Source: Fimbriosthenelais zetlandica (lineage: Eukaryota). Taken from it: a stretch of 64,000 nt of DNA. A program made the translations under genes and the position numbers. Shown in pieces: positions 7,301-46,353 of the stretch (its first letter is position 1; the number at the start of each line of letters is the position of its first letter). Location: the NCBI GenBank assembly GCA_977030845.1, contig OZ365110.1, forward strand, positions 32,240,001 through 32,304,000, read 5' to 3'. The notes beneath the pieces were generated by a model that made no database searches, had not been told where the DNA came from, and saw only the letters and a list, made by a program, of their open reading frames with translations.

Positions 7301-10300
7301 TTCTGATTGGATCCAATGGTTGAAATTGTGTCAGTGGTTAGCCTTGCCTAGGTGTAAACGTCTGTACAAATTACAAGCATTTGGGTGTGAATAGAAATAA
7401 TATTATAGTTTTGGACAGCTGTCGTATGGATCTGGATAGAGAATCGGCTTTAGTCCCAGAGTCACAAGGAAAAAAGTTCCAAAAGAGTCGCAAGAGTCAC
7501 AAATCACTTTGGCATAGCATGAGGGAGGATATGGCCTTGCCTTATACTTTAACGGTATAGTGGAGATTAATATTATTTACAACAAATGCGAGCTTCAACC
7601 AGTACGTTAGAAACTCATGTCGTGCTGGCATATGAGCTATAGACGAAGACATTCAACATACACTTGTTGCCAAATTGTATGGGGAAGCATACTTACATGT
7701 ATATAATACACTGCATCCCCCAAAATCGCCCGGGCATGGTGCCACCCATTCCCTATACCATTAGTTGCTCTAGGACCGAGCACTTTGGAATTTTCTGAAT
7801 ACGATTTCTTTTATATATCGGGATATCGGAGTGGGACTAGCACCAAAGGTTTGGATATTAATAATCCTTCCATTGAGCCTCGTGTTAATTTTGGCTAAAG
7901 TGGAACTATTAGCAACAATATTATTGATGACAGACTGACGGATAGTTGGCAATTGGGGGAAGATTGGCAACTGTAGGGCTCTTTGTAACATGTCAATTAC
8001 AGAGAAATATTTCACAATTCATTGATTTATATAACAGATTATACCTACCTCATCCTTGATAAGACCAATAAATACTGGGTAGTCTGGATCAGGTACCTTG
8101 GTTAGTAAGTTATTTACCAAGTCTCTCATGTCAGTATGACTTGGAATGAACAATGTCTGATTAGAATCACCACAGATTTTCTCAGCCTCGGACCAGCACA
8201 GATTCTCATGATGCCCATAGAACCTGTGTCGAGTTGAAGAGACCCAGCGAGTGGCAAATGGATCTCGGGATTGTAGATGAATATGAAGTTCATCGGAACA
8301 ATTTGAAATCAACGAATCATGATTACCTCGGATGATCAGAGAGATATTGTGTCCTCTTCTATTCACCCAGGTATAACTAGACGTTTCCATGTGATTGAAA
8401 GAATAGAGAATGTTTCTCTGGGGGCCTACTCTGGCTATAGCCATGTCATATGCATTAAGACACCCAATACTTTCTGTGGAAATATGAAGGTAAGCTCTAT
8501 TATTTGAATATCGGGGATGCCATGCATAGTTAGAAATGGCAGGTGTAAGGTTGAATATATTTTCCTTGAGAAGAGTTGGGTTAGGGATTTTAATTATCAC
8601 ATCCGAGAACATACCAATCCTGTGAAAATATGGTGAGGTTACCAAAGTTGGTGCCTGGTTTCTATACCTTTCAATATGTTTATAGATTACTAAGAAAAAG
8701 CTATGGTGATATTTATGGCAATCACTTAAATGATACTGAATAGTTGTGTCAATGGAATCAAATGGAATTGTTTCTTCCACTCTACCAGGTCCAGAATAGT
8801 CAAAGATCTGTTTTTGATGCGTTTTTAATTTTAAATGTGACTTACAAGAAATACTTGAAGCATAGTGGTCTGAAGCTGGAATGAAAATTTTCAGTCGGAA
8901 TGTCCTAGAACCTGCCACTGAAAGCGAACGTAATACTGCATAGCAGGAACGAAAGCTATGTATGATATAGTCAGATCTGGAGTTTAAATGAAATGTCCTG
9001 CGAACATCAAACTGCTTTGAACAATCCTCAATTACTGTAGATTCTAAATTTGGATTGAATGTCCACTCAACTGCCATCTTCCCCATTCTGCTAGGCATGT
9101 ACACTATAACAGTAGTTTCTATGACATTAATTGGGAAATCAATCTCCATGCCGTCCAAATTAGTACACATGGGATGAAGTGGATTGCCATAGAAATCAAA
9201 GAAAATACCTCCATGCGAGCAAAATCTGTTTGAATACCCATCATATTGTTTAATCTTCAAAGTAAGAATACCAGACATATCCCACTTTTTTCTATACGTT
9301 TCTGTTCTGTTCGTGTTTCCTAGGTTCACATACTGATAAAAGAATGATCTTGGCCAAAAAGTGTAGAATGAAATTTTCACCAATGTTTTCTCCTGATCGA
9401 CTATAAATCCACCGACGATTATGAACCTCAGATTGAGTGACCGAATGCGAGGGAGAACGTTCTTTTTATTAATCACTTCTCCATCATACTTGCAGTGGTA
9501 TTTAAAAAGTAAACCGGAAAGTTCACTCAAACTGCTGTAGATATAAATGTCCAGGTTCTTATATGAACAGAGTAACTCTTGCATGTCATAGCCTGCAGTA
9601 TCCCCCAACAAGTCCAAGGCATAGATAGGCTTCTTTTTGTAAAAACAGACAAGGTTGGAATGTCTTATATATGAAAACGTTGATAAAGGTTTTCGTGGGT
9701 CGGGGACATCAGAAGTACAGTTTACATGTCCTTTATTGTGGACTTGGTATATCAGCCTTACCAAAGACCACTCTGTTGAGTACCGCACATCGAAGATTAG
9801 TTTCATACTGTTCCGCGCGGAGTATTCTGACCAGGGCGGTTTCCTGCCACAGTGAACCAAAGATGTATTAGTCACGTAAGTATTGATCACTTCCAGCCTG
9901 TTATACATGCAGTCTTTGGAAAGTGGAAAGACAAACTCCAGAATACTGACATTGATCATGATGCCCTCTGGTTGAACTATAATCAGGGTCTTACTAAAGA
10001 AAGTGTCGTCATTTTTGATGGCAACAGCCCCGCATATGGAACTCAGGACCTGAACATGATGCGAGCTTGAAAAGTGAGGTTCTCTGCCACCACAGAAGTC
10101 TTTCTCTTTCTGAATCTCAGATCTTAGTTTTGAAAGGCAAGGCTGAGTTTGCTGCACACATGGTGTGATAGATTTCCTTAATGTTATCATAATGAATTCT
10201 GTGAACATATCCTTCCATCCTCCTCTGTCATCGGGGGAATTGGATTCTGAACCCTTGGTTATTTCAGAAAGTGTCCCTGGTAAGAAGGACAAAGAAATGG

Positions 10301-10352
10301 CTGGTGTAATTCCAGCAAATAATACAATGGCGACGATAGAAGAGACTCCCAT
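4321..10352 (-). CDS. GRL101-like LDLa/LRR GPCR with N-terminal CUB and C-type lectin domains (~1685 aa, 2 coding exons)
   Basis: Exon 10352-8049 encodes a signal peptide (MGVSSIVAIVLFAG), a CUB-like segment (DCMYNRLEV...HCGRKPPW) and the first half of a CTLD (WSEAEKIC...VFIGLIKDE). A phase-0 intron (8048-7075) joins it to exon 7074-4321 (ENTFKWMNDVKLTYTNW, LDLa repeats such as CDGIRDCPDGSDE, LRRs, 7 hydrophobic segments). Confidence 0.9.
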
Positions 10353-11557
10353 CTTGGTGAAAAGCCTGATTTTTGAAATAAAGAGGAAATTCCCCAATCC
10401 TCATGGCAGCCACTGTGGAAAAGATGGACGAGGGACTTCCCTACTTATACCAGAAGCGAGACACGATGAAGATATCTTTTTCATCCACCTTATATTGTGG
10501 GGCCAAAAAGTCATTGGAATTGATCATAATTTCTTGGACCCACCCTGACATGTTATACACTACTTTAATGAGAATCCTGACTTTTCTTATGATTTAATCT
10601 CGTGGCAACGCCCAAATACTGGATTTCATTTCTGATTGCTTCGGCTGGGCTAAATCCACTAGTGAGTTTTGCTTTAGAATTCATGTAACTTTTGGTCGCA
10701 CTTCTTGCAATTGCACTAAATGTTAATAGGGCATAATCATGTCATCTCCACTTCGATTTTCACTGTTTCTGATTCTTGTATCACAAATCACAAATGTATA
10801 GGATTATTATTGTAAGGGACCTTCTATCACATCCAACAAGGAAATTGCAACGGAAAAATTGCAACTAATGCTCTGTGATTGGTGTAGAAAAGTTATATAG
10901 GCCTATAGCACGCATGAATGCATGTAAACTATAGTTTTATTATGGCTTAAAATTATTAGCCTGATCATGTTTGTAGGCCCTAATAATAAGAGGCCAACGT
11001 TTATGAAGGGGTTAACTAGTAGGCCTATATGGTATTTCACACTACACCATAATATAGATGACGTGTTTTCACTTAATGAGTCTAAAGTCGCAAAAATGAA
11101 TTTTGCCTTGTCCTCTGGGACAACCCCACTGGTAACATTCACGAGGGCCTCATAGCCCCTACTAGTTTGCCTTGATGAGATCGGATCCCAGTTTTCTATA
11201 GTTCACCTTTCCTCCGCTCTTTTATTTTGGCGCTGTTTATACCCCGATGTCATCTGCATTCGAACCTTGCGGGCACCAGTCGTGCACGCTACCCACAGTG
11301 CCACTGAGTTCACCCACCTCCGTCCTTTCACCTATTGGCTTTATATAGGCCTAATAGTTACGCAACCTCGGCTAATTACAGCGCTGGATGCCAATCAAGG
11401 GTTGATGGTGTCGCTATGACTCAGTGGCGCTACCACACGACAAACAGCCTCATCATTGCAAAACATTAGACTCCCCTCGGGAGAAATTCTGATCCCAAGG
11501 CTATATGTCTCTTTGGCATCCCACCTGGCTGAAATGGAAAAAAGCAAAGCCATATGT

Positions 11558-16800: not shown

Positions 16801-18264
16801 TACTGCTAACTTCACATTTGATACTATTATATTTCATACGTAGAATATACATGTAGGCCTATATTGATATATGATTCTCGTGTCTGGGATATTACACAAC
16901 ATTGATCTTATTTTTGTCTATTCTGGTATTTAATGTGTCTAGTTCGTATGATATTGTAACCAGAGTTTATGGATCATTCAGATGCATAATAGACAGTTGA
17001 TGTGAATAGTGATTGTATGACTGTACTTTACTGTGTAAGGATCTCAACGGAAGTTATAGGTAGGCTTCTGGTAGATCAGATGATGATCCTGACAGGTACT
17101 TTTGTAATTTTTATCAAATATTTTCAAAACAAAATTGCTCTTTGTTGTTATACTATTATTTACAACAGCAAAAAACCAAACGGAATATTTATAATTTACA
17201 TTATTATATTGATTTCCATAATAGTTGTAGCAAATGGAGCTTGCCGTCTTCGAAATGCAAAGAACTTTAACCTACTTAGCTTAAATACCGTCAGCCGTCA
17301 CACTCCGATGCACAGGCCTTTAGTCACTCTGGATCAAAGTGTAATAATACCCAATATTTAATACAATGGGATATATTTTAAATCTTTTATTGACTAAAAT
17401 TGACAATGTAACAGTTATATATAAAGTTACAGCGACAGTTATGGTTACATCTTAAATCATACAAGAAGTATTAATAATATTTGCTCTATATATAAATATT
17501 ATGCACTCTGGAATAGAAAGTTATCGTACAAGGTCTATACCTATTACATTTCTGAGAAATTTTCCGTTTTCTTTATTGGAAACATAATGTGTATATATCT
17601 TGATATAAATATGGATGTAGTGCAATAAGCATCTTAAGGTGCAATAAGCATCTGGTGACACCTAGTGGCCACTAGGTGACCACCTGTGTCCACCGTGGCA
17701 GTGCCTCCCACTCCACCTCCCTCCCTCACCTGTCTCACTCTGGTGTCGACTTTGTGAGGCATGCCAGGAAAATGATTTAGCCAAACGCGTTATTTTGCCA
17801 CCAACGAGTTTAGAAAACGTTCTATACTCGCTCTTGCCATATATAATTATACAGATAATAGGATGTTTCCTCAGATGTGAGATTCGGGTGTTCGATCGAC
17901 CCCCGAAAGTTTAGTTAAAAATCGATGTACTGGTAGGCCTATGCAACTATTTTACATAAGGCCTACACTTTGGAAGATCCACCAACAGGACGTTTATGGA
18001 TTTAATACTGACCATTTCAACGATTTATAGGCCTATTACAAGTTGATGATGAATATGCGTTTTCATCAGGTATTTGAAAACTTCAAAAACCCAAAACTGG
18101 CAATGACACTGACGAGACCGGATGGATGCCAAAAAGGAAGCGTGCACCTATATCATGCTAAGTTTTGGTAAAATTCCCAGCTGTTTTAAGTGTGAAAATC
18201 GGTATTTATTTCCACTTGTTCCAGTCAAAAATTGGTTGAGTGAAGTTCTTTTTTAAAAATATCA

Positions 18265-18336
18265 TGACGCGGACGTGATTCGAACAGGCAAACTTCTGAT
18301 CTGGAGTCAGACGTGTTACCGTTGCACCACGGAGCC
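18265..18336 (-). pseudogene. tRNA-Trp(CCA)-like, probably a pseudogene
   Basis: D, anticodon (CTCCAGA) and T arms resemble eukaryotic tRNA-Trp. The acceptor stem has two mismatches. Confidence 0.7.
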
Positions 18337-18375
18337 AGTTGACCTACTCTTATCTAGTATAAATACATTGAAATA

Positions 18376-32000: not shown

Positions 32001-34252
32001 GATTTAAAAAAAAAGAGGATCGGGGTGAGTTCAGTCTGGGAGCAAAACATAACGCACAATTTGGCGACAACATATCCAACGGGGGGAAAGATACATTATA
32101 AGAAATTAGGTCAGGTAGAAATGTCAGAAATCGTTTGGGGAAATTTTGAAAATAGGCCTATAAGTTTTTTTCAACTGTCAAAATGTAGGTTAGTTATACA
32201 TTTAGTGCCATACTATGGGCAGAGGGTTATACCGTAATTTTTCCACACATTTGTTTGAACTGATCGCACCTATAGATTCAAGATGATTCTAGGTTGGGAA
32301 TCACCTATACCCTTATAAAGTTCTGTATTGGACCGTAGGCGAAATTTTATGGCGAAATCCGACTGGCTTCAAGTTCAAATCAAGGGCTTAGAATACATAT
32401 TATTGTAACCGGACCATGCACTGAAACCTACAAATTCCCAGTCCATCTCCTGAAGGGCAGAGATTCATCCAAAAATATGTCCCCGGGGCCCCACGGCCCC
32501 ACAGGGGAGGGGGCTGGCAGGCCAGCATCAGATCCCCCGGCAAATAAACAGGCATCGGAAGCGATAATAAACAAATAAACCCAGAAGACTGGCTCGTGTA
32601 TTTTGGGCCAAGTGTGTACCATTAACACAACCAAGTAGCGGAAATCAAAGCCTAGGGTTTTATACAACAGTATCGGCTATTTCACAATACGAACATGTCA
32701 GTGGCACGTGCTTATTTTTCTAGGAATCCGGGATGACTAGGTGAGCTCACAGGTACGGCGCAACTCTACCAGCAGCTGCCCATCTCTATATAGGGGCTGT
32801 TTCATAATATTTTCCATCGCTTCACAGATTAAACGTGAGAATACATTATCTTCTTTATGACAGAAACGTGCGGGTTTCTGGAAAAATATGCAATTCATGA
32901 GGATGTTCCATAAAAATATATAATATTATAGACTTTAATTCTTTTATTACATATTATGACATATACATAGATTTTGATACAATTAATCAGTATTGAGACC
33001 CCGATTGAGGAATCAAAGCGGAGTTGGAAGGGGCATGGCTATGTCATATGTCAGGGGCGGATCCCGCAATTTGAAAAGGAGAGGGGTAGGGTTCGAATTT
33101 GAGTTGGGTTGGGAGCAATGTAGGCCTACCCTATACCTACATACCTTTGTATAGATTCACATCTCACTATGATTATTTTAACTGATTTGGTTTTATGTGT
33201 ATAGAATGTGTATTGGATGTATGTGAATTGGAATGTGAATTACGCTTAAGCTGAATTTCGGATAAGCTGAACGGATTTTCATTTTAAGTTCACCTTAAGT
33301 GGGAAGCAGTGTAAATACGACCGATCAATACTGAAACCTACATATATTATGATATATTCAAGCTTCCCACCGAACTCGGGCTCCTGGATTCAAAGTCCAA
33401 TGTGCTAACCACTACACCATGGCGCCATTGAGATCAGAGTGAGTCCTACTGCGTTTTCTCCCCCGCCCCACACTCATTACCGGAAAATTTGTTTAACCAT
33501 TCTGTGCTAAAAAAGTCGAGGCACCACCGAGGTTCGAACTCGGGCTCCTGGATTCAAAGTCCAATGTGCTAACCACTACACCATGGCGCCAGTGCGAGCA
33601 AAGTGAGTCCTACTGCGTTTTCTCCCCCACCCCACCCTCATTACCGGAAAATTTGTTTAACCATTCTGTGCGCCATTGAGATCAGAGTGAGTCCTACTGC
33701 GTTTTCTCCCCCGCCCCACCCTCATTACCGGAAAATTTGTTTAACCATTCTGTGCTAAAAAGCTTGAGGCACCACCGCGGTTCGAACTCGGGCTCCTGGA
33801 ATCAAAGTCCAATGTGCTAACCACTACACCATGGCGCCCGCGGGAGTGTACCATAAAAAAAACTATATTTCGGACAGGTATCGGGTATTATACCTATATA
33901 TAGCCTCGGTAAGGCTAACCACACTTTCACAATCATTGGATGCCATTAGAAATGGAGGTCGGATGGCGACGGATTGGGGAATCGGATTAGTGTGTTCCAT
34001 GCTTAAACTTATTGTCTATCGTAATAGTGAGTGTACCCTTGAGCATCCTTGTCTTCTTCATAGATCTAGAAGCACGTTTCTATGTCATTTTCGGCAACTT
34101 TGTTATTTTAATAAGCTTAATTCTAAAGCAGAACAACGGGTATAGGAGACATGCACCCAGCACATACCTGTTCTGAAGGCTTGAGACTTGTACGTCAGAC
34201 TGGCCAAGGTGACGACAGCTAATGACCACACTACGTTCATGTATATCACCAT
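26060..34252 (-). CDS. Secreted protein: signal peptide, Cys-rich domain, Ig, second Cys-rich domain, 2x EGF (>=472 aa)
   Basis: Phase-consistent exons 34252-34168 (MVIYMNVVWSLAVVTLA), 30678-30410, 30024-29856, 29319-29146, 28952-28845 (Ig: SC...WLRDG...DTGKYTC), 28451-28211, 27608-27427 and 26463-26275 (EGF). The terminal exon 26103-26060 is tentative. Confidence 0.85.
27655..27796. mobile_element. MITE-like dispersed repeat, family 1
   Basis: Inverted ends (ACTAATCCGATTCTC...GAGAATCGGATTAGT). Related pieces occur at ~7245-7310, ~33935-34002 and ~52545-52712. Confidence 0.65.
30908..31140. repeat. Three degenerate ~75-90-bp tandem units
   Basis: TAATCGACCAAG...AAATATCCA...CCTTAGATAA...ACAGGTAGT occurs three times. 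Confidence 0.75.
33372..33426 (-). pseudogene. 3'-truncated tRNA-Gln(TTG)
   Basis: Identical to the 5' 55 nt of the intact copy and breaks off in the T-loop. Confidence 0.8.
33519..33590 (-). tRNA. tRNA-Gln(TTG)
   Basis: GGCGCCATGGTGTAGTGGTTAGCACATTGGACTTTGAATCCAGGAGCCCGAGTTCGAACCTCGGTGGTGCCT: complete cloverleaf, followed by a T-run terminator. Confidence 0.9.
33767..33838 (-). tRNA. tRNA-Gln(TTG) variant
   Basis: Same sequence as the 33519 copy except a T-stem mismatch and a loop change (CTTTGAT). Confidence 0.7.
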
Positions 34253-35516: not shown

Positions 35517-35625
35517 CGGTCGCCTGAGTGACGAGGGCGTCACCTTGTGGCGTATAAATACACCAGGCAGGTTAGTGAGCAGACAGAACTTGTCCTCTGC
35601 TCAATCAGCAAACAACAACCAGCAA
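35517..35625 (+). promoter_or_regulatory. Conserved core promoter and leader, copy 1
   Basis: CGCCTGA-GTGACG AGGG CGTCAC-CTTGTGGCG-TATAAAT (35553), then a leader block shared by all copies. Confidence 0.75.
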
Positions 35626-35815
35626 TCATATTCTACGATCATCTATATTACATAACATTCTATTGCCTTCTATACTCTAATACATTCTTCCATCAGCAAA
35701 TTTACAGAAAGAAATCTTCCACTTCAACGATCAGGTTTTGAATTCACCAAGTCATTGAGATTGTCATTTCCTAGAAAACTTCATTTAGCACTTTGTCCTA
35801 AAGCCACAAGTTGCC

Positions 35816-36136
35816 ATGGAATCTTCACAGGGAGCTGAAATGATCCAGAAGATGCGCGTCATGGAACGTCGTTTTGACCGTGTTTGTCGTCAGCTGATAC
35901 TGATGAACAACAACATCCGGGCCGTCAACGCTCGTTACCAGCGCTCCCTCCGCAACGACAGGAAAACACTCCGCTACAACCTGCGACTGCGCATTCTCAC
36001 CCTGGAGGGTGTGAGGGATATGTTTACACAGTATGCAGAAGATAAAGCTGATCAACTGGACGCCATGGAGGACGATCTGCTAGACAAGTATGACATCGAC
36101 TGGCAGGACGTTTATGACGCTGATCTGGAGGGCTGA
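35816..36136 (+). CDS. Unnamed helical protein family, copy 1 (106 aa, intronless)
   Basis: Intact ORF with near-identical paralogues in the window, an upstream TATA box and a downstream stem-loop. Many differences between copies are synonymous. Confidence 0.88.
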   Translation: MESSQGAEMIQKMRVMERRFDRVCRQLILMNNNIRAVNARYQRSLRNDRKTLRYNLRLRILTLEGVRDMFTQYAEDKADQLDAMEDDLLDKYDIDWQDVYDADLEG

Positions 36137-36184
36137 TGGCTGTCACAACTACAGCAGTGCTCTTCACCACCGACCTTAACAAAA

Positions 36185-36222
36185 GGCCCTTATCAGGGCC
36201 CCCCCTCACTGACAAGAAATGA
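36185..36222 (+). terminator. Histone-type 3' stem-loop plus HDE-like element (copy 1)
   Basis: AAAA-GGCCCT TATC AGGGCC (36185-36200), 12 nt, CAAGAAATGA (36213-36222); 48 nt after the stop. Confidence 0.8.
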
Positions 36223-37867
36223 TTTTTCGTGTTCTGTTTCTTTTACCCCAAAAAGCAATATGTCCTGAATATAACCTATCAAAATTTCATGTCAATGTTA
36301 AGCCAATCTACATTCAAGACCTAAATGGTCTGTCTCGGACTTACTAATCCCACTTTCTTAAACTTTTACAAATAAGAATATCTGTGCTACTCCCTGTTCC
36401 CTGTGTGTATCATCAGCATCATATAGCTGATATATGGGTCCGTTGCACAGCGAATCGTAAAGCAAAATTCGCATAGTAAATCTTTCGTAAACGTCTTGCT
36501 GTTGCACAGAGAGAAATCGTATCGTAAAAGGACTGTTCGTATCGTAAATCATAGGTAATTTTGCGAGGTGATCTAAGGCACCAAACATCGTAATCGTATC
36601 TTATATCGTAATCGTATCTTAAACTACGGTAGATCGTTATCTTATGGAGGCATGTGTGTGTGGAGGAGTAATCCTAGCCCTTCGTTATAGGCATAATTAA
36701 ACATCGTCGGACAGTAAAATTTATTTTTTGGCAAGCATGTCCTGAGGTCTACAATCTATTTTTTTTACGGTACATATCCGAATCTCATATTATATAATGA
36801 AGAAGCCTCACATGATGCCACATAATTATATGTATAATTTTGGGTAAATATGGCCAAATTTTGATCAGAAACGGGCCCTGAAAGCTGTAGAAATGTGACC
36901 CAAATCTTCAGGCAATAAAGTCAAGAAACGCAATGACAAAAAAAGTAAGAAATGACCTCGATGCTTCAGCTTTGAGACTAGCAATAGACAACAAATATGA
37001 TTTGCCCCTCAGAGTCCGGGGAATAAGGGGGAGTAAGTGGGGGAAAACCCGGAGGGTCGTAAGGTCAAGGCGGAAGGGAAGGAGGGTGGGTCTGGCCGTG
37101 TGTATGAAACACTCAGGGGAAATCAACCTTCTTGGCCCTTACAACAGCAGAGGGGTGAAAAGACTGAGACTGAGTGATAAGCAGCGTCACCTTCTGGGCG
37201 TTAATTGACACTACAAATTTCCCGGGAGTACGATCAAAGGTAAACATCATCAATCATGACGAATGATGATAGTAAGCTCCAGTAAGCTACGAGTGGTGAA
37301 AATCATAATATCAGTGTGTTTTACAAGTAAATCTTCGCCATCTACCTCGTTGAGTAATTGCATTGTTCCAATGCTGTTAAAAAATGTTTGGACAATAAAA
37401 TGCTTGTTATTGCATTGTCCAAGCATTGGTTTTTTTTTTTAAAAAGTGCCATGAAATGGGCCAGAAATGGAAGTGATGGGAATCATGAGATGGGGACAGA
37501 TGGGGACTCAAAGAGTGTTAATAGGGAGAATAGAGAGTGAGGAGACAGAGATGGGAGAGAGGTGGTAAAGGGAGGAAATGAGTGAGTACTGTAGAGGGGA
37601 TGCCATATATGGAGGCCTGTCACATAAGCTCTACAGTGTTTCTATAAATTAAATATATTATTTACTTTCTTGTCCATACTACATGTACGCAATCTTACCC
37701 ATACAGCGACAGTCGCACAACAAGTGACAAGTGTAGGCCTACTCATTGTTAAACTCAATAATGTCAACAGGCGTGAACAACTGTATAGCGACGGTCGCGC
37801 GACAAGCATTAAATCCACTCATCACTGAGGCAAATCGCTAACATTGTGACAGTGTGATCTAGACATG

Positions 37868-38000
37868 TCAGGTGTCAATCATTCGTGCGCCTGAGTGACG
37901 AGGGCGTCACCTTGAGGCGTATAAATACACCAGGCAGTGTAGTTAGCAGACAGAACTTGTCTTCTGCTCAATCAGCAAACAACAACCAGCAATCAATCAT
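37868..38000 (+). promoter_or_regulatory. Conserved core promoter and leader, copy 2
   Basis: TGTCAATCA (37873-37881), the GTGACG/CGTCAC palindrome and TATAAAT at 37920. Confidence 0.75.
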
Positions 38001-38210
38001 AACTCTACAATCATCTATATAATAGAACATTCTACTGCCTTCTACTCTATTGCATCCGTTGCTTCCCGTAGCAAAGAGAAAGAAACCTTCTACTTCCACA
38101 ACCAGGTTTTGAACCCACCAAGAAGAACAACAGCTAGGCCTCTCATCGAGATCATCATTTCTTAGAATCGTTTCCTTTGCATACTGTCTTAACCCCATCA
38201 AAAGTTCACC

Positions 38211-38537
38211 ATGGAATCTGGCCAAGGAGCTGTTGAAATGATCCAGAAGATGCGCGTCATGGAACGTCGTTTTGACCGCGTCTGTCGTCAGCTGATACTG
38301 ATGAAAAACAACATCCGGGCCATCAACGCTCGTTACCAGCGCGCCCTCCTCGACGACAGGAAAACACTGCGCTACAACCTGCGACTGCGCATTCTCACCC
38401 TGGAGGGTGTGAGGGATATGTTTACACAGTATGCAGAAGATAAAGCTGATCAACTGGACGCCATGGAGGACGAACTGCTAGACAAGTATGACATCGACTG
38501 GCAGGACGTTTGTGACGCTGATCTGCTGCAGGGCTAA
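38211..38537 (+). CDS. Unnamed helical protein family, copy 2 (108 aa)
   Basis: Intact paralogous ORF with the same promoter and 3' signals as copy 1. Confidence 0.88.
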   Translation: MESGQGAVEMIQKMRVMERRFDRVCRQLILMKNNIRAINARYQRALLDDRKTLRYNLRLRILTLEGVRDMFTQYAEDKADQLDAMEDELLDKYDIDWQDVCDADLLQG

Positions 38538-38586
38538 CGAACTTGTCACCATCTAGAGCTTCTTCACTATATCCACTTAAACAAAA

Positions 38587-38624
38587 GGCCCTTATCAGGG
38601 CCCTCCCACCTTCACAAGAAATGA
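38587..38624 (+). terminator. Histone-type 3' stem-loop plus HDE-like element (copy 2)
   Basis: GGCCCT TATC AGGGCC (38587-38602), 12 nt, CAAGAAATGA starting at 38615. Confidence 0.8.
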
Positions 38625-38774
38625 TTTTTCGTGTTTTTGTTGTCCCTTTTCTATTTTTAAATAAATCCCCTTGCTTTAGCCATCCTGAATGTAAGTACAT
38701 ATGTCACAAGTCCTTGTGTAAATCTACCTGGTTCTAAAGTAAGGTTCGTGGGCTAATTTGAGTTTGAAGTCTTC

Positions 38775-39105
38775 ATGGGGGGAAAGGGATGGAGGAGATA
38801 TGGGGAGAGGTATGGAGGGGAGATGGAGAGAGGGATGGAGTAGAGATGGAGAGAACGATGGAGTAGAGATGGGGAGAGGGATGGAGAAGAGATGGGGAGA
38901 GGGATGGAGTGGAGATGGGGAGAGGGATGGAGGAGAGATGGGGAGAGGGATGGAGAAGAGATGGGGAGAGGGATGGAGGGGAGATGGGGAGAGGGATGGA
39001 GGAGAGATGGGGAGAGGGATGGAGGAGAGATGGGGAGAGGGATAGAGGAGAGATGGGGAGAGGGTTGGAGGAGAGATGGGGAGAGGGATGAAGAGTTGGA
39101 TGAGG
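38775..39105. repeat. Purine-rich GGAGAGATGG/GGAGAGGGAT satellite
   Basis: Low-complexity tandem array between family copies 2 and 3. Confidence 0.85.
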
Positions 39106-40164
39106 ATATATGCAGAGATGAGTTTGGATAGGGAGGTGAGATTAATCCTGAGAGAAATGGGACGATAAGGTGGAAGGTATGCATTTAATAATATGAATGA
39201 TACTACGTGTATATTAAGTGTTTAAGTACATGTACATGTACAAGTTTTCAAACATACAGCGGTGGGGAGATGAGAGTCAGCCAGAGGGTGTATAGACAGT
39301 CAGTAGAAGGTCATAGAGAAGAAAGAGAAGAGATGAAGGGGAACTGAAGTACGAAAGGGAGGAAGAAATTAACCAAGAATATAACAAAGAAAGTTGACAT
39401 TTTAATGACTCCTATAAGAAACAAATCAACTCTAGCCAATTATTGAAGCGAGTCGCTCACTTCAGTGACTGATTGCATTTTAAAGAGACCAAGTGTCAAG
39501 AAAGAAAATTGTTGATATTGGAATCTTAAGCTATGCTTCCATAACTGTAATCAATTACTAATTTTACCAATCTACCTCTCTCTCTATAATATAACTATGA
39601 AGCTAGCCTTCCATATACACATTATTTGTAGTGGAAAAGCATCCACTGTCCACTTTGATGTCTCCCCTTCAAATAAGCCACGCTATGGGTAATCCACACA
39701 CCAGAGACCATAGCTGACATAGCTCTAGAAATAATTTCTCTTTGTTTATGTCTTCATCTATTGTAAGGTTTTGTGATCAGAAGATGCCAGACTGCCCATA
39801 CCACTATAGCACCAGTTTGGGTATATAAACCCTGTATATCAGAGTCCAAGCAAGTCAGTTCTGTCTTGGGCATTCAAGCAACATTAACAAGTACTAGAAC
39901 TACCACCTATATTACAAAACGTATCTCTCACATTTGTCTCACACTTCCATGAGAATAGTTTTTCTCACATAATATTTGCATTATTTATTTCTTGGATCGG
40001 GAGGCCAATGTTATCTGACATATGGAGAAACAGTCCCGTGACAACTAACAAATCTACTCAAGTTATTCACTGATATCAGGAGGTGTCATTGACTGCTCAG
40101 TACGAATTGGTTACATAACCCAGCCTAATCACTACAGGAGGGTGACACATGACTATATGACATC

Positions 40165-40296
40165 CCAGGTGTCAATCATTAGCGCTACGGTCGCCTGAGT
40201 GAGGAGAGTGTCACCTTGAGGCGTATAAATACACCAGATGGTGTAGTTAGCAGACAGAACTTGTCTTCTGCTCAACCAGCAAACAACAGCCAGCAA
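40165..40296 (+). promoter_or_regulatory. Conserved core promoter and leader, copy 3
   Basis: TGTCAATCA, a degenerate palindrome (GTGAGG AGAG TGTCAC) and TATAAAT at 40224. Confidence 0.72.
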
Positions 40297-40357
40297 GACT
40301 GAGATCACCATTTCTTAGAATCTTTTACATCGAGTCTCAACCCCATCAGAAGTTAAC

Positions 40358-40681
40358 ATGGAATCTGCCCAGGGATCTTTTGAAATGATCCAGAAGATGC
40401 GTAGCATGGAACGTCGTTTTAACCGCGTCTGTCGTCAGCTGATACTGATGAACAACAACATCCGGGCCGTCAACGCTCGTTACAAGCGCGCCCTCCGCGA
40501 CGACAGAAAAACACTGCGCTACAACCTGCGACTGCGCATTCTTACCCTGGAGGGTGTGAGGGACATGTTTACAAAGTACGCAGAAGATAAAGCTGATCAA
40601 CTGGACGCCATGGAGGACGAACTGTTGGACAAGTATGACATCGACTGGCAAGAAGTTTGTGACGCTGATCTGCAGGGGTAA
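40358..40681 (+). CDS. Unnamed helical protein family, copy 3 (107 aa)
   Basis: Intact paralogous ORF. The leader is shorter (TATA to ATG 134 nt) and the stem-loop has a TTTC loop. Confidence 0.88.
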   Translation: MESAQGSFEMIQKMRSMERRFNRVCRQLILMNNNIRAVNARYKRALRDDRKTLRYNLRLRILTLEGVRDMFTKYAEDKADQLDAMEDELLDKYDIDWQEVCDADLQG

Positions 40682-40716
40682 TGGCCTTGTCACCACCACT
40701 ACCTACCTAAACAAAA

Positions 40717-40754
40717 GGCCCTTTTCAGGGCCCTCTCACATTCACAAGAAATGG
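40717..40754 (+). terminator. Histone-type 3' stem-loop plus HDE-like element (copy 3)
   Basis: ACAAAA-GGCCCT TTTC AGGGCC (40717-40732), an exact match to the histone consensus; 12 nt; CAAGAAATGG starting at 40745. Confidence 0.85.
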
Positions 40755-41974
40755 TATTTCGTGTTTTTGCTGTCCTTTAGAAAAAATAGCCCCCCCCCCC
40801 CCACCCGGAAGATGGTAAAGAGTATGAAGGGATAGGGAAGGCCCTTATAACTGGCCATGTGAGAGAATAAGGCATTACTTTTACATAATAGATGTACAGC
40901 AGATGCAGAAGAAAGGAAAGAGTAGAAAGCATGAGAGTTGGGAAGATTTCGGGAGAGGGGGGAGAGGGCCGGTGAAACCGGAGAGATTATCTAGAATGAT
41001 TATGAAAGAGATTGAGGTGAAAGATGACAGAAGGGCCAAAGATAAATAGAATTAAAAAAATTATCTTTTTAATAGAATAGGAAGTGGGTTTCAGTCATAT
41101 TTAAAGCCACGTGTGGAGCTGCTCACTATGGATTATAAAGACGCCAAATGACATCTGTCATCATGCCTACATATTTTTGTTCATATATTTATTCCTGGTA
41201 CATGTCCATAAAGGCCTATAGTATATCTTGCCCATAGTCGCCCAACATTCCTACTGGTTGCCAAAGCAATTCACTAATATCAAAAGGTGTGAGCGATTGT
41301 GTAGAAGTGCGCGCGACAAGCAATGTGTCGCCCTACTCTCCCAGACCCTGACCTGCTCCTTTTTAGAAAATTATATACAAAATTTAGCAGAAATCGTCAA
41401 GATAATCCCTATATTGAAAATTATACGAAACCTAAAATTTCAGCTTTTTTGTACAATATCAATGACATACAAAGACAAAATAAGTCTTTACTCTTTACTG
41501 AGACAATCATCTGAGAGGTAGATAATGAAGAGAAGTCATGTGGACACAGTTGATGACATGCTAACTGAAGTAATATCATTTCAAGGTCTGCACTCAGAAG
41601 GTTCTAAACTACCGACATTTGCCAACACATAAAACAATACTTTAAAAGTTCAACAATACCAAATAATAAAATCAATATTTCCGGTCTGTTCACAATGTTT
41701 ATCATGACATAATGCTGAAAAAGGTCTGATATTAACTTATTCTGTGACATCAGAAGATGTCATTCAGTGCTAATTCGTTACATAACTGGGGCTAATCGCT
41801 ACCAGTTGCTATCAAGTGACAAGTCCACTCAGAGCTAAATTTATCATTAAATGTCAAAAGGTGTGAACGACTGTAGCGACGTTTGTCCAACGAGCATCAA
41901 GTCAGCTCATCACTGAGGCTATTGCTGACATTGAGAGTGTGATCTTGACATTCGGGCGACGGGCGACATTCGGG

Positions 41975-42095
41975 CGACGGTCGCCTGAGTGACGAGGGCG
42001 TCACTTTTTGGCGTATAAATACACCAGGCAGTGTAGTTAGCAGACATAACTTGTCTTCTGTTCAATCAGCAAACAACAACCAGCAATCAATCATA
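41975..42095 (+). promoter_or_regulatory. Conserved core promoter and leader, copy 4
   Basis: Palindrome intact and TATAAAT at 42014. The TGTCAATCA position is replaced by a short local duplication. Confidence 0.72.
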
Positions 42096-42287
42096 TTCTA
42101 CTACATCTATATTACAGAACATTCTACTGCCTTACATGTTCATTCTCCCATCAGCAAAAAGAGAAAGGAATCTTCCTCTTCCACAATCAAACTGTATTGA
42201 AGTTTCCAAGAAAAGGTCTCACATTGAGATTGCCTTTGCCCAGAATTTTTCCATTTGCACCTTTTCCGAAACCCGACAGAATTTATT

Positions 42288-42611
42288 ATGGAATCTTCCC
42301 AGGGAGCTGTTGAAATGATCCAGAAGATGCGCGTCATGGAACGTCGTTTTGACCGCGTCTGTCGTCAGCTGATACCGATGAACAACAACATCCGGGCCAT
42401 GAACGCTCGTTACCAGCGCTCCCTCCGTGATGACAGGAAAACACTCCGCTACAACCTGCGACTGCGCATTCTCACCCTGGAGGGTGTGAGGGATATGTTT
42501 ACACAGTATGCAGAAGATAAAGCTGATCAACTGGACGCCATGGAGGACGAACTGCTAGACAAGTATGACATCGACTGGCAGGACGTTTATGATGCTGATC
42601 TGCAAGGCTAA
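42288..42611 (+). CDS. Unnamed helical protein family, copy 4 (107 aa)
   Basis: ATG at 42288 by alignment with the paralogues. Carries an L-to-P change (LIPMNNN) and a degenerate downstream element. Confidence 0.82.
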   Translation: MESSQGAVEMIQKMRVMERRFDRVCRQLIPMNNNIRAMNARYQRSLRDDRKTLRYNLRLRILTLEGVRDMFTQYAEDKADQLDAMEDELLDKYDIDWQDVYDADLQG

Positions 42612-42661
42612 CCACATATATATATATAGCAATAGCTGCTTCCATACCAACCTAAACAAAA

Positions 42662-42699
42662 GGCCCTTATCAGGGCCCTCCAACATTCACAACAATTGA
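42662..42699 (+). terminator. Histone-type 3' stem-loop with degenerate HDE (copy 4)
   Basis: GGCCCT TATC AGGGCC (42662-42677), 12 nt, CAACAATTGA starting at 42690. Confidence 0.72.
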
Positions 42700-43716
42700 T
42701 ATTTGTTTTGTTCTTGAAACTTGTTTTCTTTCGCTTTTCATTACTTTTCCTTCTGTTTCTGCATCTCTCCATTCCCCACTTCTTTTCTTCTTCACTATTC
42801 TTCCCCACCCTCTATCTATATCTGTTTTCCCATCTCTTCTCGGCACCTCTCTTCTACTCTCGCAAATCTTTCTCTTGCTCTCCTCTATACCGCAAAATTA
42901 CGATGAACATTGTACACTGGATAATTATTCTGAAGTCATAGAATAGTGACGTAATAATCATTTTCATCCTTTAATTCCAATCTTACAAAAGTACTGAGAC
43001 TTGTTATAATCTAGTCACCTCGCCTATATATTAATAGATCCCTGTCGCTCTTAAATCACACTATAATTCATATCTGACCCGGGTGGGCGATGATGGATTC
43101 TAGCATTAGAGGCGAGACATTGAATAAAGATTTTCTGTCACCCGCACGGAGCACCAGTGACCGTTCCATGGCCGTGCTAAATGATCCGTGTCATCCTGTG
43201 TGCTGAGCATGTTACATTGTCGTGGCACGAGCTCACCATTTGGGCTTTGGGTTGCCTTGGCAACGTAATAGAAGGTGGCAAGATTCTAGAGGTGCCTTCC
43301 TGTTCGCGCTCGGACATTCCTTTCCTGGTGCTTTCCTGTTTGTAAATTATGGGATGGACTGGTAAGTAGCTCGATGGAGTTTTCATAGCTGTGGAGACTT
43401 CTTGATGGGAACAAGTCATATATAATGGCCTTTATAGTATAACTATAATTCATATTTGATAAATTCTGTCCATAATAGGAGTGTCACTATCGGCATAGAA
43501 CCGTATCATTTGTCCATTATTCATTTACATACGATTATGAACAAATAAAGTTAGTAGGCCTAACGACTTAGAATTATATGAAATATGCAAGAATAATATA
43601 CAACGGGAAACAACTTATCATACTAGGTATACATGTCAGGGGATTCCAAAAATCATTAGGAATCAAAAGGAAAGGAAATTTGTAAAAAAACAAAACAAAA
43701 AAAAACTAACGAAATA

Positions 43717-43862
43717 TCATTACTTGTCAGTGAGGGAGAGCCCTGATAAGGGCCTTTTTGTTTGCATTTAAGTCACATTCAAAATGGCTTAAACTGAAAG
43801 ATTTTATTGAACAGAACAATATAAGTGTTTCTTGTGAATGAGAGAGGGCCCTGATAAGGGCC
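43717..43862 (-). terminator. Two tandem histone-type stem-loop plus HDE cassettes (copy 5)
   Basis: Proximal stem-loop 43862-43847, 12 nt, CAAGAAAC. Distal stem-loop 43754-43739 (GGCCCT TATC AGGGCT), 12 nt, CAAGTAATGA. An AATAAA lies between them (43808-43803). Confidence 0.78.
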
Positions 43863-43904
43863 TTTGTTTAGGTGGGACAACAGCTATAGATGGTGACAAG
43901 GTCA

Positions 43905-44216
43905 TCAGCCCTCCAGATCAGCGTCACAAACGTCCTGCCAGTCGATGTCATACTTGTCTAGCAGTTCGTCCTCCATGGCGTCCAGTTGATCAGCTTTATC
44001 TTCTGCATACTGTGTAAACATGTCCCTCACACCCTCCAGGGTGAGAATGCGCAGCCGCAGGTTGTAGCGCAGTGTTTTCCTGTCGTCGCGGAGGGAGCGC
44101 TGGTAACGAGCGTTGATGGCCCGGATGTTGTTGTTCATCAGTATCAGCTGACGACATACGTGGTTAAAACGACGTTCCATGACGCGCATCTTCTGGATCA
44201 TTTCAACAGATTCCAT
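43905..44216 (-). CDS. Unnamed helical protein family, copy 5 (103 aa)
   Basis: Intact paralogous ORF on the minus strand, followed by two stem-loops. Confidence 0.88.
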   Translation of the reverse strand: MESVEMIQKMRVMERRFNHVCRQLILMNNNIRAINARYQRSLRDDRKTLRYNLRLRILTLEGVRDMFTQYAEDKADQLDAMEDELLDKYDIDWQDVCDADLEG

Positions 44217-44354
44217 GTTAACTTCAGATGGGTTTCAGACAAGGTGAAAATGACAATCTCAATGAGAGACCTGTTCTTATCGGTGAGTTCAAAACCTGTT
44301 TGTGAAAGTGGAATATTTCTATAATATGGATGACAGACAGCAGAGTGTGTATGG

Positions 44355-44483
44355 TTGCTCGTTGTTGTTTGCTGATTGAGCAGAAGACAAGTTCTGTCTG
44401 CTAACTAAACTGCCTGGTGTATTTATACGCCACAGGTGACGCCCTCGACACTCAGGCGACCTTGCTCTGACGATTGACACCTA
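44355..44483 (-). promoter_or_regulatory. Conserved core promoter and leader, copy 5
   Basis: Reverse-strand TATAAAT (44427-44421), a near-palindrome and TGTCAATC. Confidence 0.72.
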
Positions 44484-45620
44484 CGATGTCATGTGTCAAG
44501 ATGACACTATCTCAATGGTGGCGATAGCCTCAGTGATGTAACCAATTAGCACTGAGCAGTCAATGACACCTTCTGATATCAGTGAATAACTGAACGATGA
44601 GTTGACTTGTCACTTTTCCCGCGACCGTTGCTCTATTGGGGCCCACATGGAACTGGCCCACTTTATAGTTAACAACGGTTTATCATGCCCTTGTCTTTGT
44701 TTCCAATACCTGAGTGGTTTTCATAAAAATGTCAACTTTCTTTATTTTACTCGCCATCCTTCTCCTTCAATCTCTCCAGGGGCCCATTTCAGCACAAAAA
44801 TATTCCATAGACTTAATTAGCATTGATAATAGTTGTTCTGAAACAGGCCCCAATTCCCACCCATCTATTCTCTTCCCTTTCTCCATCCATTCCTCCACAT
44901 TCAGGGGGCTGTTTCAGCGCAAAAGTCTCCCATAGACTTAACATTGCTAATGGTTGTTCTGAAACCCACTTCCAACTCTTCATCTCTCTGCCCTTCTCTC
45001 CCCTTAAAGGCGAGAATTCAACACAAATTATTAAATAATTGGGCTTATGTAATTTTTGCAAATGTCGCAACGGCTTTGACATTCAATTTAATAAATAGCT
45101 CTAGCAATGAATAGACTTGTCACTTGTCGCGCGAATGTCGCTCTATGAGACATGTACATGCCTATAATATACATATGGGCCTGAATAATGGGCAAAATAC
45201 ATGTGTATCATGTAAGATACACTATGGGCCTATCTTGTCATTTGGTATCTTTAAAATTCAATGAGCCACAATTAATAAATGGCCTCAATTGACTAATAGA
45301 AATTTGTCTATAATTAAAGTATAATTCAAATATTAAAAAGTTTCCCTTTTTCTCTCCCATTCCCTATGTCCATCAGTTTCCCCTATCCTTGCCTCCATAT
45401 CACTTCATCTCTCATTCCATCCATCTCTCGCCATATCTCTCCCATTATCTCTTGTCATAACTATTCAAATATTAAACAATTGGGGTTAAAATGATATCAT
45501 TAGCCAAAGGAGCTTACTATAGGAACTAGGGATTCAGGGAGGGTTTGTGATGGTCAGCCACTTTCAGGATGACTAAGTCTTAAACTGTGGGATTTATTTT
45601 TTTTAAAGAAGAACAAAAAA

Positions 45621-45658
45621 TCATTTCTTGTGAAGGTGGGAGGGCCCTGATAAGGGCC
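45621..45658 (-). terminator. Histone-type 3' stem-loop plus HDE-like element (copy 6)
   Basis: Stem-loop 45658-45643, 12 nt, CAAGAAATGA (45630-45621); 43 nt after the stop. Confidence 0.8.
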
Positions 45659-45701
45659 TTTTTTTGCTAAATGCAGGTAGGGAGAAGACAGATATAGGCC
45701 A

Positions 45702-46025
45702 TCATCCCTGCAGATCAGCATCATAAACGTCCTGCCAGTCGATGTCATACTTGTCTAGCAGATCGTCCTCCATGGCGTCCAGTTGATCAGCTTTATCTTC
45801 TGCATACTGTGTAAACATGTCCCTCACACCCTCCAGGGTGAGAATGCGCAGGCGCAGGTTGTAGCGCAGTGTTTTCCTGTCGTCGCAGAGGGAGCGCTGG
45901 TAACGAGCGTTGATGGCCCGGATGTTGTTGTTCATCAGTATCAGCTGACGACAGACGCGGTCAAAACGACGTTCCATGACGCGCATCTTCTGGATCATTT
46001 CAACAGCTCCTTGGTCAGATTCCAT
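45702..46025 (-). CDS. Unnamed helical protein family, copy 6 (107 aa)
   Basis: ATG at 46025 by alignment. Promoter and 3' flank closely resemble those of copy 2. Confidence 0.88.
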   Translation of the reverse strand: MESDQGAVEMIQKMRVMERRFDRVCRQLILMNNNIRAINARYQRSLCDDRKTLRYNLRLRILTLEGVRDMFTQYAEDKADQLDAMEDDLLDKYDIDWQDVYDADLQG

Positions 46026-46217
46026 GGTGACTTTTGATTGGGGTTTGAGACAGTATGCAAAGGAAAAGATTCTGCGAAATATCAATCTCAATGTGAGACC
46101 TTTTCTTTGTCACTTCAAAACTTGATTGTGGAAGATTTCTTTCTCTTTGCTGATGGGAGAATACAAGTTATTATAAGGCAGTATAATGTTCTATTATAGA
46201 TGATTGTAGAGTAATGA

Positions 46218-46353
46218 TTGATTGCTGGTTGTTGTTTGCTGATTGAGCAGAAGACAAGTTCTGTCTGCTAACTACACCGTCTGGTGTATTTATACGCCTC
46301 AAGGTGACGCCCTCGTCACTCAGGCGACCGTCGCACGAATGATTGACACCTGA
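46218..46353 (-). promoter_or_regulatory. Conserved core promoter and leader, copy 6
   Basis: Reverse-strand TATAAAT (46294-46288), an intact palindrome and TGATTGACA (46340-46348, + strand). Confidence 0.75.

Follow-up and report, generated by a model that had tools for sequence, protein, structure and literature searches.

A histone-type 3′ end cassette follows a predicted non-histone gene family in Fimbriosthenelais zetlandica

We analyzed a 64,000-nt stretch of the Fimbriosthenelais zetlandica genome (assembly GCA_977030845.1, contig OZ365110.1, positions 32,240,001 to 32,304,000 of the forward strand; hereafter, the window), in which six gene units, spanning positions 35517 to 46353, end in what appears to be the 3′ processing signal of replication-dependent histone mRNAs, i.e., a short stem-loop followed at a fixed distance by a purine-rich histone downstream element (HDE). 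To our knowledge, this combination has been described elsewhere only in replication-dependent histone genes; both SLBP (stem-loop-binding protein) and U7 snRNP (small nuclear ribonucleoprotein), which act on it, are treated as dedicated to them. Judged from sequence comparison, the genes carry the signal, selection acts on it, and in many lineages it goes with one family of proteins that are not histones. We put the probability that the cassette is a working SLBP/U7 processing signal of this non-histone family at roughly three in four; from that signal we infer actual cleavage by SLBP/U7 and coupling to the cell cycle.

Cassettes and gene units in the window

Searching the window with GGCCCTTATCAGGGCC (GGCCCT-TATC-AGGGCC) and allowing up to 2 mismatches returned seven sites, all in the sense orientation relative to the genes, against an expectation of 0.01 matches in dinucleotide shuffles, among which the observed count was reached in 0 of 100. 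All seven hairpins have a 6-bp stem and a 4-nt loop, and the spacing between stop codon and stem is 48, 49, 35, 50, 42, and 43 nt in copies 1 to 6, respectively. Every cassette carries the A-rich 5′ flank AAACAAAA, and in seven of seven an HDE-like 10-nt element begins exactly 12 nt past the stem. These decamers are CAAGAAATGA (three times) and CAAGAAATGG, CAAGTAATGA, CAAGAAACAC, and CAACAATTGA (once each), the last of which, in copy 4, is degenerate. The loop is UUUC, the histone consensus, in copy 3 and UAUC in the remaining copies. The pattern search thus bears out the first-pass annotation of this DNA, which had described seven such hairpins 35 to 50 nt past the stops of six intronless open reading frames (ORFs), an element 12 nt after each stem that was degenerate in copy 4, and a TTTC loop in copy 3. 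It had also proposed scoring the hairpins with the Rfam Histone3 model (RF00032), and this model recognizes all seven (21.4 to 36.1 bits, E values of 1.7e-7 to 0.05), with copy 3 alone (36.1 bits) passing the Rfam gathering score of 34 bits. The second hairpin of gene 5, which is the weakest by Histone3, scores 46.5 bits with covariance model R1, built in this analysis. The RF00032 scan gave no further Histone3 match elsewhere in the 64-kb window, and the Rfam scan of the window gave no U7 match.

Upstream of every hairpin, the ORF scan found an uninterrupted, intronless frame of 103 to 108 amino acids, with genes 1 to 4 on the plus strand and genes 5 and 6 on the minus strand. The copies are clustered, and copies 2 to 6 are 89 to 95% identical to copy 1. 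When the six units were aligned with their flanks, only three blocks proved to be conserved, i.e., the promoter and leader, the coding sequence (CDS), and the stretch from the A-run to the HDE. The first of these is about 105 nt long and centered on a palindromic TATA box, while the third opens with AAACAAAA, includes the hairpin and the HDE, and stops some 15 nt past the latter. Outside these blocks, in the central part of the 5′ untranslated region (UTR), the spacer between stop and hairpin, and all the DNA further downstream, the sequence has drifted, with indels. By this alignment, the hairpin block is selectively maintained in the six units. The ratio of nonsynonymous to synonymous substitution rates (dN/dS) is 0.18 to 0.63 between copies and 0.05 to 0.20 against the nearest foreign homologues, where synonymous sites are saturated; because these values are low, the ORFs can be taken as real protein-coding genes under purifying selection.

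The promoter block contains two palindromes, GTGACG-AGGG-CGTCAC, which consists of paired TGACG half-sites, and GGCGTATAAATACACC, within which the TATA box lies (35521-35564 in gene 1, with equivalents in the other five genes). The TATA box and an ACACC(C)AGCA motif are also retained in two homologous loci, L003 and L006.

The protein family and its cassette across homologues

A profile search of 1.84 billion representative proteins placed 725 of them in the family at E values up to 0.001 and 276 at E values up to 1e-10. Only 3 of the 725 are named, all as “hypothetical protein,” from the tubeworm Lamellibrachia satsuma and the limpet Patella caerulea, which by this profile search belong to the same family as the window protein. 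The nearest homologues, with 64 to 73% identity, were found in the Logan assemblies of three ERR runs. One cluster (P0246) has 135 member sequences, with its representative on a 710-kb contig, a copy number that resembles histone gene arrays, and loci L009 to L011 (ENA ERZ26222911) form a head-to-tail array with a 1.84-kb period. No relative was found in 2.9 million viral contigs. From these searches, the family appears to be undescribed yet widely conserved.

Neither the window proteins nor 30 family members could be assigned to a Pfam family, and there was no histone or CENP-type Pfam match at E values up to 1 or 0.1. The family profile had no sequence relative in the PDB (histones included, at E values up to 1), and a protein atlas search gave no lead on the identity of the protein. 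AlphaFold2 with a 90-sequence alignment gave a model with a mean predicted local distance difference test (pLDDT) score of 95.2 and a predicted template modeling (pTM) score of 0.77, with helices at residues 2-47, 50-92, and 96-105. The fold is therefore predicted with confidence as a long antiparallel alpha-hairpin, of about 45 residues per helix, plus a short helix. This model supersedes an earlier run with 10 sequences, which had given a single continuous helix (pTM, 0.38) and with which a Foldseek search of the PDB returned nothing. With the 90-sequence model, the PDB matches are generic antiparallel alpha-hairpins only, such as the core hairpin of PspA/Vipp1/ESCRT-III, the LSD1 tower, and the STAT coiled coil. 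Template modeling scores are 0.7 to 0.85 over about 90 residues for PDB and AlphaFold DB matches, but identity to these known hairpins is 10 to 18% and the Foldseek E value at least 0.1. As such hairpins recur in unrelated proteins, these matches give no evidence for shared ancestry or function. Membership in the PspA/ESCRT-III group was rejected, with no Pfam PspA or Snf7 match, Foldseek E values of at least 0.2, and 10 to 19% identity. The nearest AlphaFold DB clusters are uncharacterized proteins (26 to 33% identity) with the same predicted fold as the window protein.

The first-pass annotation had allowed that the protein might turn out to be a diverged histone, and nothing in these searches points that way. 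There is no histone among 50 PDB or 30 AlphaFold DB fold matches, the model is a two-helix hairpin with a short helix rather than the helix-loop-helix-loop-helix of the histone fold, and there is no sequence match to CENP-S, -T, -W, or -X. On profile and model evidence, the encoded protein is not a histone. Its net charge is +10 over residues 13 to 68 and −12 over residues 69 to 106. The basic center is arginine rich, with Arg40, Arg43, Arg53, Arg57, and Arg67 conserved in 82 to 97% of the family, the acidic tail bears tryptophan, and many relatives have added long acidic tails. Because of the basic hairpin, the acidic aromatic tail, the long acidic tails of relatives, and the histone-like tandem arrays, we can tentatively suggest that the protein may act on chromatin, nucleic acid, or histones.

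The cassette follows most of the homologues fetched, many of them in invertebrate or marine sequences, in at least 10 sequence-distinct versions. In the nearest homologues, one or two histone-type hairpins lie 28 to 90 nt after the stop and are followed by CAAGAG- or GAGAG-type elements. In the 1.84-kb array, each 105-amino-acid gene is followed 39 nt on by GGCCCT-TCTA-AGGGCC and then, 11 nt later, by CAGAAGAG, while in a second array, from a different assembly, two diverged paralogues lie on opposite strands and each has a cassette of its own. Among 51 metagenome loci fetched by a conserved peptide pattern, a strict pattern (GG...CC, full pairing, and U at loop positions 1 and 3) found about 20 genes with a cassette. 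The strict pattern missed about 19 more, which were later recovered directly after the stop by a covariance model trained on 29 cassettes. Both halves of the family tree have members with the cassette. The tree is poorly resolved and, as about 19 loci were misclassed, its count of gains and losses overstates the changes, so it is read only to this extent. Since both halves have the cassette, the association with the family appears from these sequences to be old, with losses or repeated gains. The cassette is thus retained in homologues of other species despite saturated synonymous sites, a comparison that the first-pass annotation had called for. Its proposal of a non-histone family with an SLBP/U7 signal holds up in the sequence tests, whereas adoption of the signal locally, in this genome, does not, the association being family-wide, old, and present in both halves of the tree.

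Double stem-loops 14 to 20 nt apart were observed in the nearest homologues, at L001 (449-536), L003 (1556-1613), and L006 (1394-1451), and in the metagenome locus L059 (581-638), compared to 108 nt in the double stem-loop of copy 5 (43717-43862). The loci L069 to L077, which have no cassette, adjoin a GRIM-19 (NDUFA13) gene in two different assembly sets, and this may be the conserved neighborhood of a polyadenylated branch of the family.

The 6-bp stem and 4-nt loop are kept in all of the 43 distinct cassettes that we compared. Pairs 3 and 4 show compensatory changes from C-G to U-A on both sides, and in one group (AGCTCT/AGAGCT) both sides of pair 1 have changed from G-C to A-U. G at stem position 2 and U at loop positions 1 and 3 are found in 43 of 43, the two loop residues being required by the pattern search but not for covariance-model matches, although the cassettes used to train that model had them. 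At loop positions 2 and 4 every base is seen, giving ten loop variants, and the top, loop-closing pair is U-A in 29 of the 29 cassettes in alignment A4. These invariant positions (G2, loop U1 and U3, and the U-A closing pair) are those expected to be read by SLBP. Past the stem, a purine run of at least 6 nt starting at 10 to 16 nt is found in 38 of 43 cassettes and in none of 43 upstream control windows; for AAAGA, the figures are 28 of 43 and 0 of 43. The 3′ flank starts with AC or ACC in most relatives. The position of the HDE is kept across lineages while its sequence varies, as expected if each HDE tracks its own U7. AAAGA is the complement of UCUUU, the universally conserved box of U7 (PMC5054213).

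Feature coordinates and surroundings of the cluster

Coordinates are collected in Table 1. Copies 2 and 3 are separated by a 23-bp tandem repeat (GGGGAGAGGGATGGAGGAGAGAT, 13.6 copies), which is the reason for spurious long ORFs on both strands there. Two near-identical tRNA-Gln(UUG) genes, 250 nt apart, lie just upstream of the cluster. Two large uninterrupted ORFs are also found in the window, the first of which codes for a 911-amino-acid receptor with LDLa, LRR, and seven-transmembrane (7TM) regions, of the GRL101/relaxin-receptor type, with at most about 30% identity to anything found.

TABLE 1 Features of the gene cluster and its surroundings in the window (stem-loop scores are for Rfam Histone3)
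Feature	Position	Strand	Details
Gene 1 promoter and leader	35521-35626	+	Inverted repeat GTGACG-AGGG-CGTCAC; TATA palindrome GGCGTATAAATACACC at 35549-35564; conserved leader of ~60 nt
Gene 1 CDS	35816-36136	+	106 aa; dN/dS 0.18-0.54 vs remaining copies
Gene 1 cassette	36185-36222	+	Stem-loop 36185-36200 (UAUC); 12-nt spacer; CAAGAAATGA 36213-36222; 31.3 bits
Gene 2 CDS	38211-38537	+	108 aa
Gene 2 cassette	38587-38624	+	Stem-loop 38587-38602; HDE-like element 38615-38624; AATAAA ~40 nt later; 30.2 bits
Gene 3 CDS	40358-40681	+	107 aa
Gene 3 cassette	40717-40754	+	Stem-loop 40717-40732 (UUUC); CAAGAAATGG 40745-40754; 36.1 bits
Gene 4 CDS	42288-42611	+	107 aa from ATG at 42288
Gene 4 cassette	42662-42699	+	Stem-loop 42662-42677; degenerate HDE CAACAATTGA 42690-42699; 29.7 bits
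Gene 5 CDS	43905-44216	-	103 aa
Gene 5 first cassette	43825-43862	-	Stem-loop 43847-43862; weakened HDE CAAGAAACAC 43825-43834, then AATAAA; 29.1 bits
Gene 5 second cassette	43717-43754	-	Complete, 108 nt downstream of first; stem-loop 43739-43754 (closing, last pair G.U); HDE CAAGTAATGA 43717-43726; 21.4 bits
Gene 6 CDS	45702-46025	-	107 aa from ATG
Gene 6 cassette	45621-45658	-	Stem-loop 45643-45658; HDE CAAGAAATGA 45621-45630; AATAAA downstream; 29.7 bits
TATA palindromes, genes 2 to 4	37916-37931, 40220-40235, 42010-42025	+	
TATA palindromes, genes 5 and 6	44416-44431, 46283-46298	-	
Tandem repeat	38779-39090		23-bp period
tRNA-Gln(UUG)	33518-33590	-	
tRNA-Gln(UUG)	33766-33838	-	
tRNA-Trp(CCA)	18264-18337	-	Lower score, 39.6 bits
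Receptor ORF	4321-7056	-	911 aa
Second large ORF	8019-10397	-	792 aa

Processing model and alternative explanations

In the explanation that we favor, SLBP would bind the 6-bp, 4-nt-loop hairpin together with its A-rich 5′ flank, the U7 snRNP would pair with the purine-rich element (CAAGAAAUGA in the window) 12 nt downstream, and the U7-associated endonuclease CPSF73 would cut a few nucleotides past the stem. The product would be a mainly nonpolyadenylated mRNA ending in the stem-loop, whose export, translation, and decay would be under histone-like, SLBP-dependent control, with expression coupled to S phase or giving a massive supply for rapid cleavage divisions. The likeness to the replication-dependent histone 3′ end extends to the GGYYYU/ARRRCC stem of 6 bp, the loop of 4 nt whose first and third residues are U, the A-rich 5′ flank, and the fixed spacing, of about 12 nt, to a purine-rich element. 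Like histone genes, the genes themselves have no introns, exist in several copies, and have a short 3′ UTR, and their relatives include tandem arrays. The HDE of sea urchin histone genes is CAAGAAAGA; the window element CAAGAAATGA is identical to it in the first seven nucleotides and differs past CAAGAAA, without the AAAGA core found in most relatives' elements.

Unlike histone genes, the window genes code for a predicted non-histone product, and their processing is predicted here from sequence. Several observations weigh against the favored explanation. Position 2 of the UAUC loop is A, a base seldom seen there in histone genes, the 3′ flank is the C-rich CYCYCAC and not the usual ACCCA, and a 5′ UTR of about 230 nt is long for an mRNA of histone type. 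The six hairpins other than that of copy 3 (21.4 to 31.3 bits, E values of 1e-5 to 0.05) are below the Rfam gathering threshold, and the motif scan found no histone gene in the window or in any fetched locus or flank. Copies 2, 5, and 6 have an AATAAA 35 to 45 nt past the HDE, and some or most of the transcripts might be polyadenylated. Public sequencing runs were looked for with one gene and with 9.9 kb of sequence, and none was listed. A minority of the family has no stem-loop cassette, including the Patella gene L014 and the Lamellibrachia gene L015, neither of which has a described function, as well as L012, L017, L019, L022, L024, L025, L049, L052, L053, and L069 to L085. Many of the metagenome loci may be paralogues from few organisms. 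The figure of 100% paired stems is circular, as the hairpins were chosen for their ability to pair, and only the compensatory changes carry weight. Last, in one clade the fourth stem pair is mismatched, as C.A or A.C (GGCCCT...AGAGCC in L027, L029, L036, L037, L039, and L045; GGCACT...AGCGCC in L040, L041, and L065), and this could mean either that the wobble is tolerated or that the signal is weakened. The cassette of this clade is otherwise canonical, with an HDE of the GAAAGAA type.

The AATAAA hexamers suggest a different account, in which the hairpin is conserved and functional but the mRNAs are mostly polyadenylated downstream, leaving the stem-loop inside the 3′ UTR with a role in stability, translation, or localization or as a facultative alternative end. 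AATAAA-like hexamers are also found downstream in many homologous loci. Mussel histone genes have both signals, and some invertebrate and maternal histone mRNAs do likewise. For maternal Drosophila histone mRNAs, SLBP-dependent polyadenylation is reported in PMC11997800. On the other hand, the only known role of an HDE placed at a fixed distance is U7-directed cleavage, and across lineages its position is conserved while its sequence is not; moreover, copies 1, 3, and 4 have no AATAAA nearby. We therefore consider mostly downstream polyadenylation unlikely, without treating it as negligible. The nonpolyadenylated, histone-like mRNA proposed by the first-pass annotation has to be softened to this extent, as AATAAA beyond the HDE in three of the six copies makes a polyadenylated fraction possible.

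The remaining explanations seem much less probable. If the units were chimeras or decaying duplicates that captured a histone 3′ flank here by recombination, the cassette would be a nonfunctional passenger, which could fit the clustering of copies 89 to 95% identical to copy 1, the degenerate HDE of copy 4, and the weakened one of copy 5. This is highly improbable and already contradicted by the comparative data, as the cassette accompanies many distant homologues at saturated synonymous divergence, stands as an island of conservation between diverged flanks, and follows ORFs under purifying selection. Just as little weight falls on the cassette being the borrowed histone terminator of a mobile element or virus carrying the gene as cargo, an origin that would explain high copy number and patchy presence and to which the 135-sequence cluster, the 1.84-kb arrays, and the mixed orientation in the window could be credited. 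Against it stand the lack of relatives in the viral contigs and of any transposase, terminal repeat, or target duplication visible around the units, together with a conservation that stops at the promoter and HDE; purifying selection and a deep, diverse family tree fit a host gene. Least probable of all is a highly diverged histone or histone-fold protein that inherited its 3′ end from a histone ancestor. A small arginine-rich protein from an intronless multicopy gene with a histone-type 3′ end, and with relatives in tandem arrays, does recall one, but neither the Pfam and PDB profile searches nor the fold comparison returned a histone, and the confident model is a two-helix hairpin.

A working SLBP/U7 signal on a non-histone family thus remains the reading we prefer, and the sequence evidence suggests a known processing mechanism with a new client. 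Full-text searches, with subscription journals outside their coverage, turned up no account of a histone-type 3′ end in any non-histone family. We lean slightly toward a broader form of this reading, in which the family belongs, so far unnoticed, to the replication-dependent histone regulon and provides the first non-histone cellular mRNAs cleaved by SLBP/U7. The protein would then be a stoichiometric partner of new histones or newly replicated chromatin, and this would be the reason for its intronless, histone-like tandem arrays.

If this is true, SLBP and U7 would lose their exclusivity to histones, as a conserved family of other proteins would have the full cassette, and nature would have provided a test of what else the pathway does besides supplying histones. 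Its natural variants, with an A-U first pair or C.A and A.C at pair 4, would show which changes in the stem-loop are tolerated. Poly(A)-selected transcriptomes would not show such genes, most of which lack annotation, and the family would point to a protein whose dosage apparently must track DNA replication.

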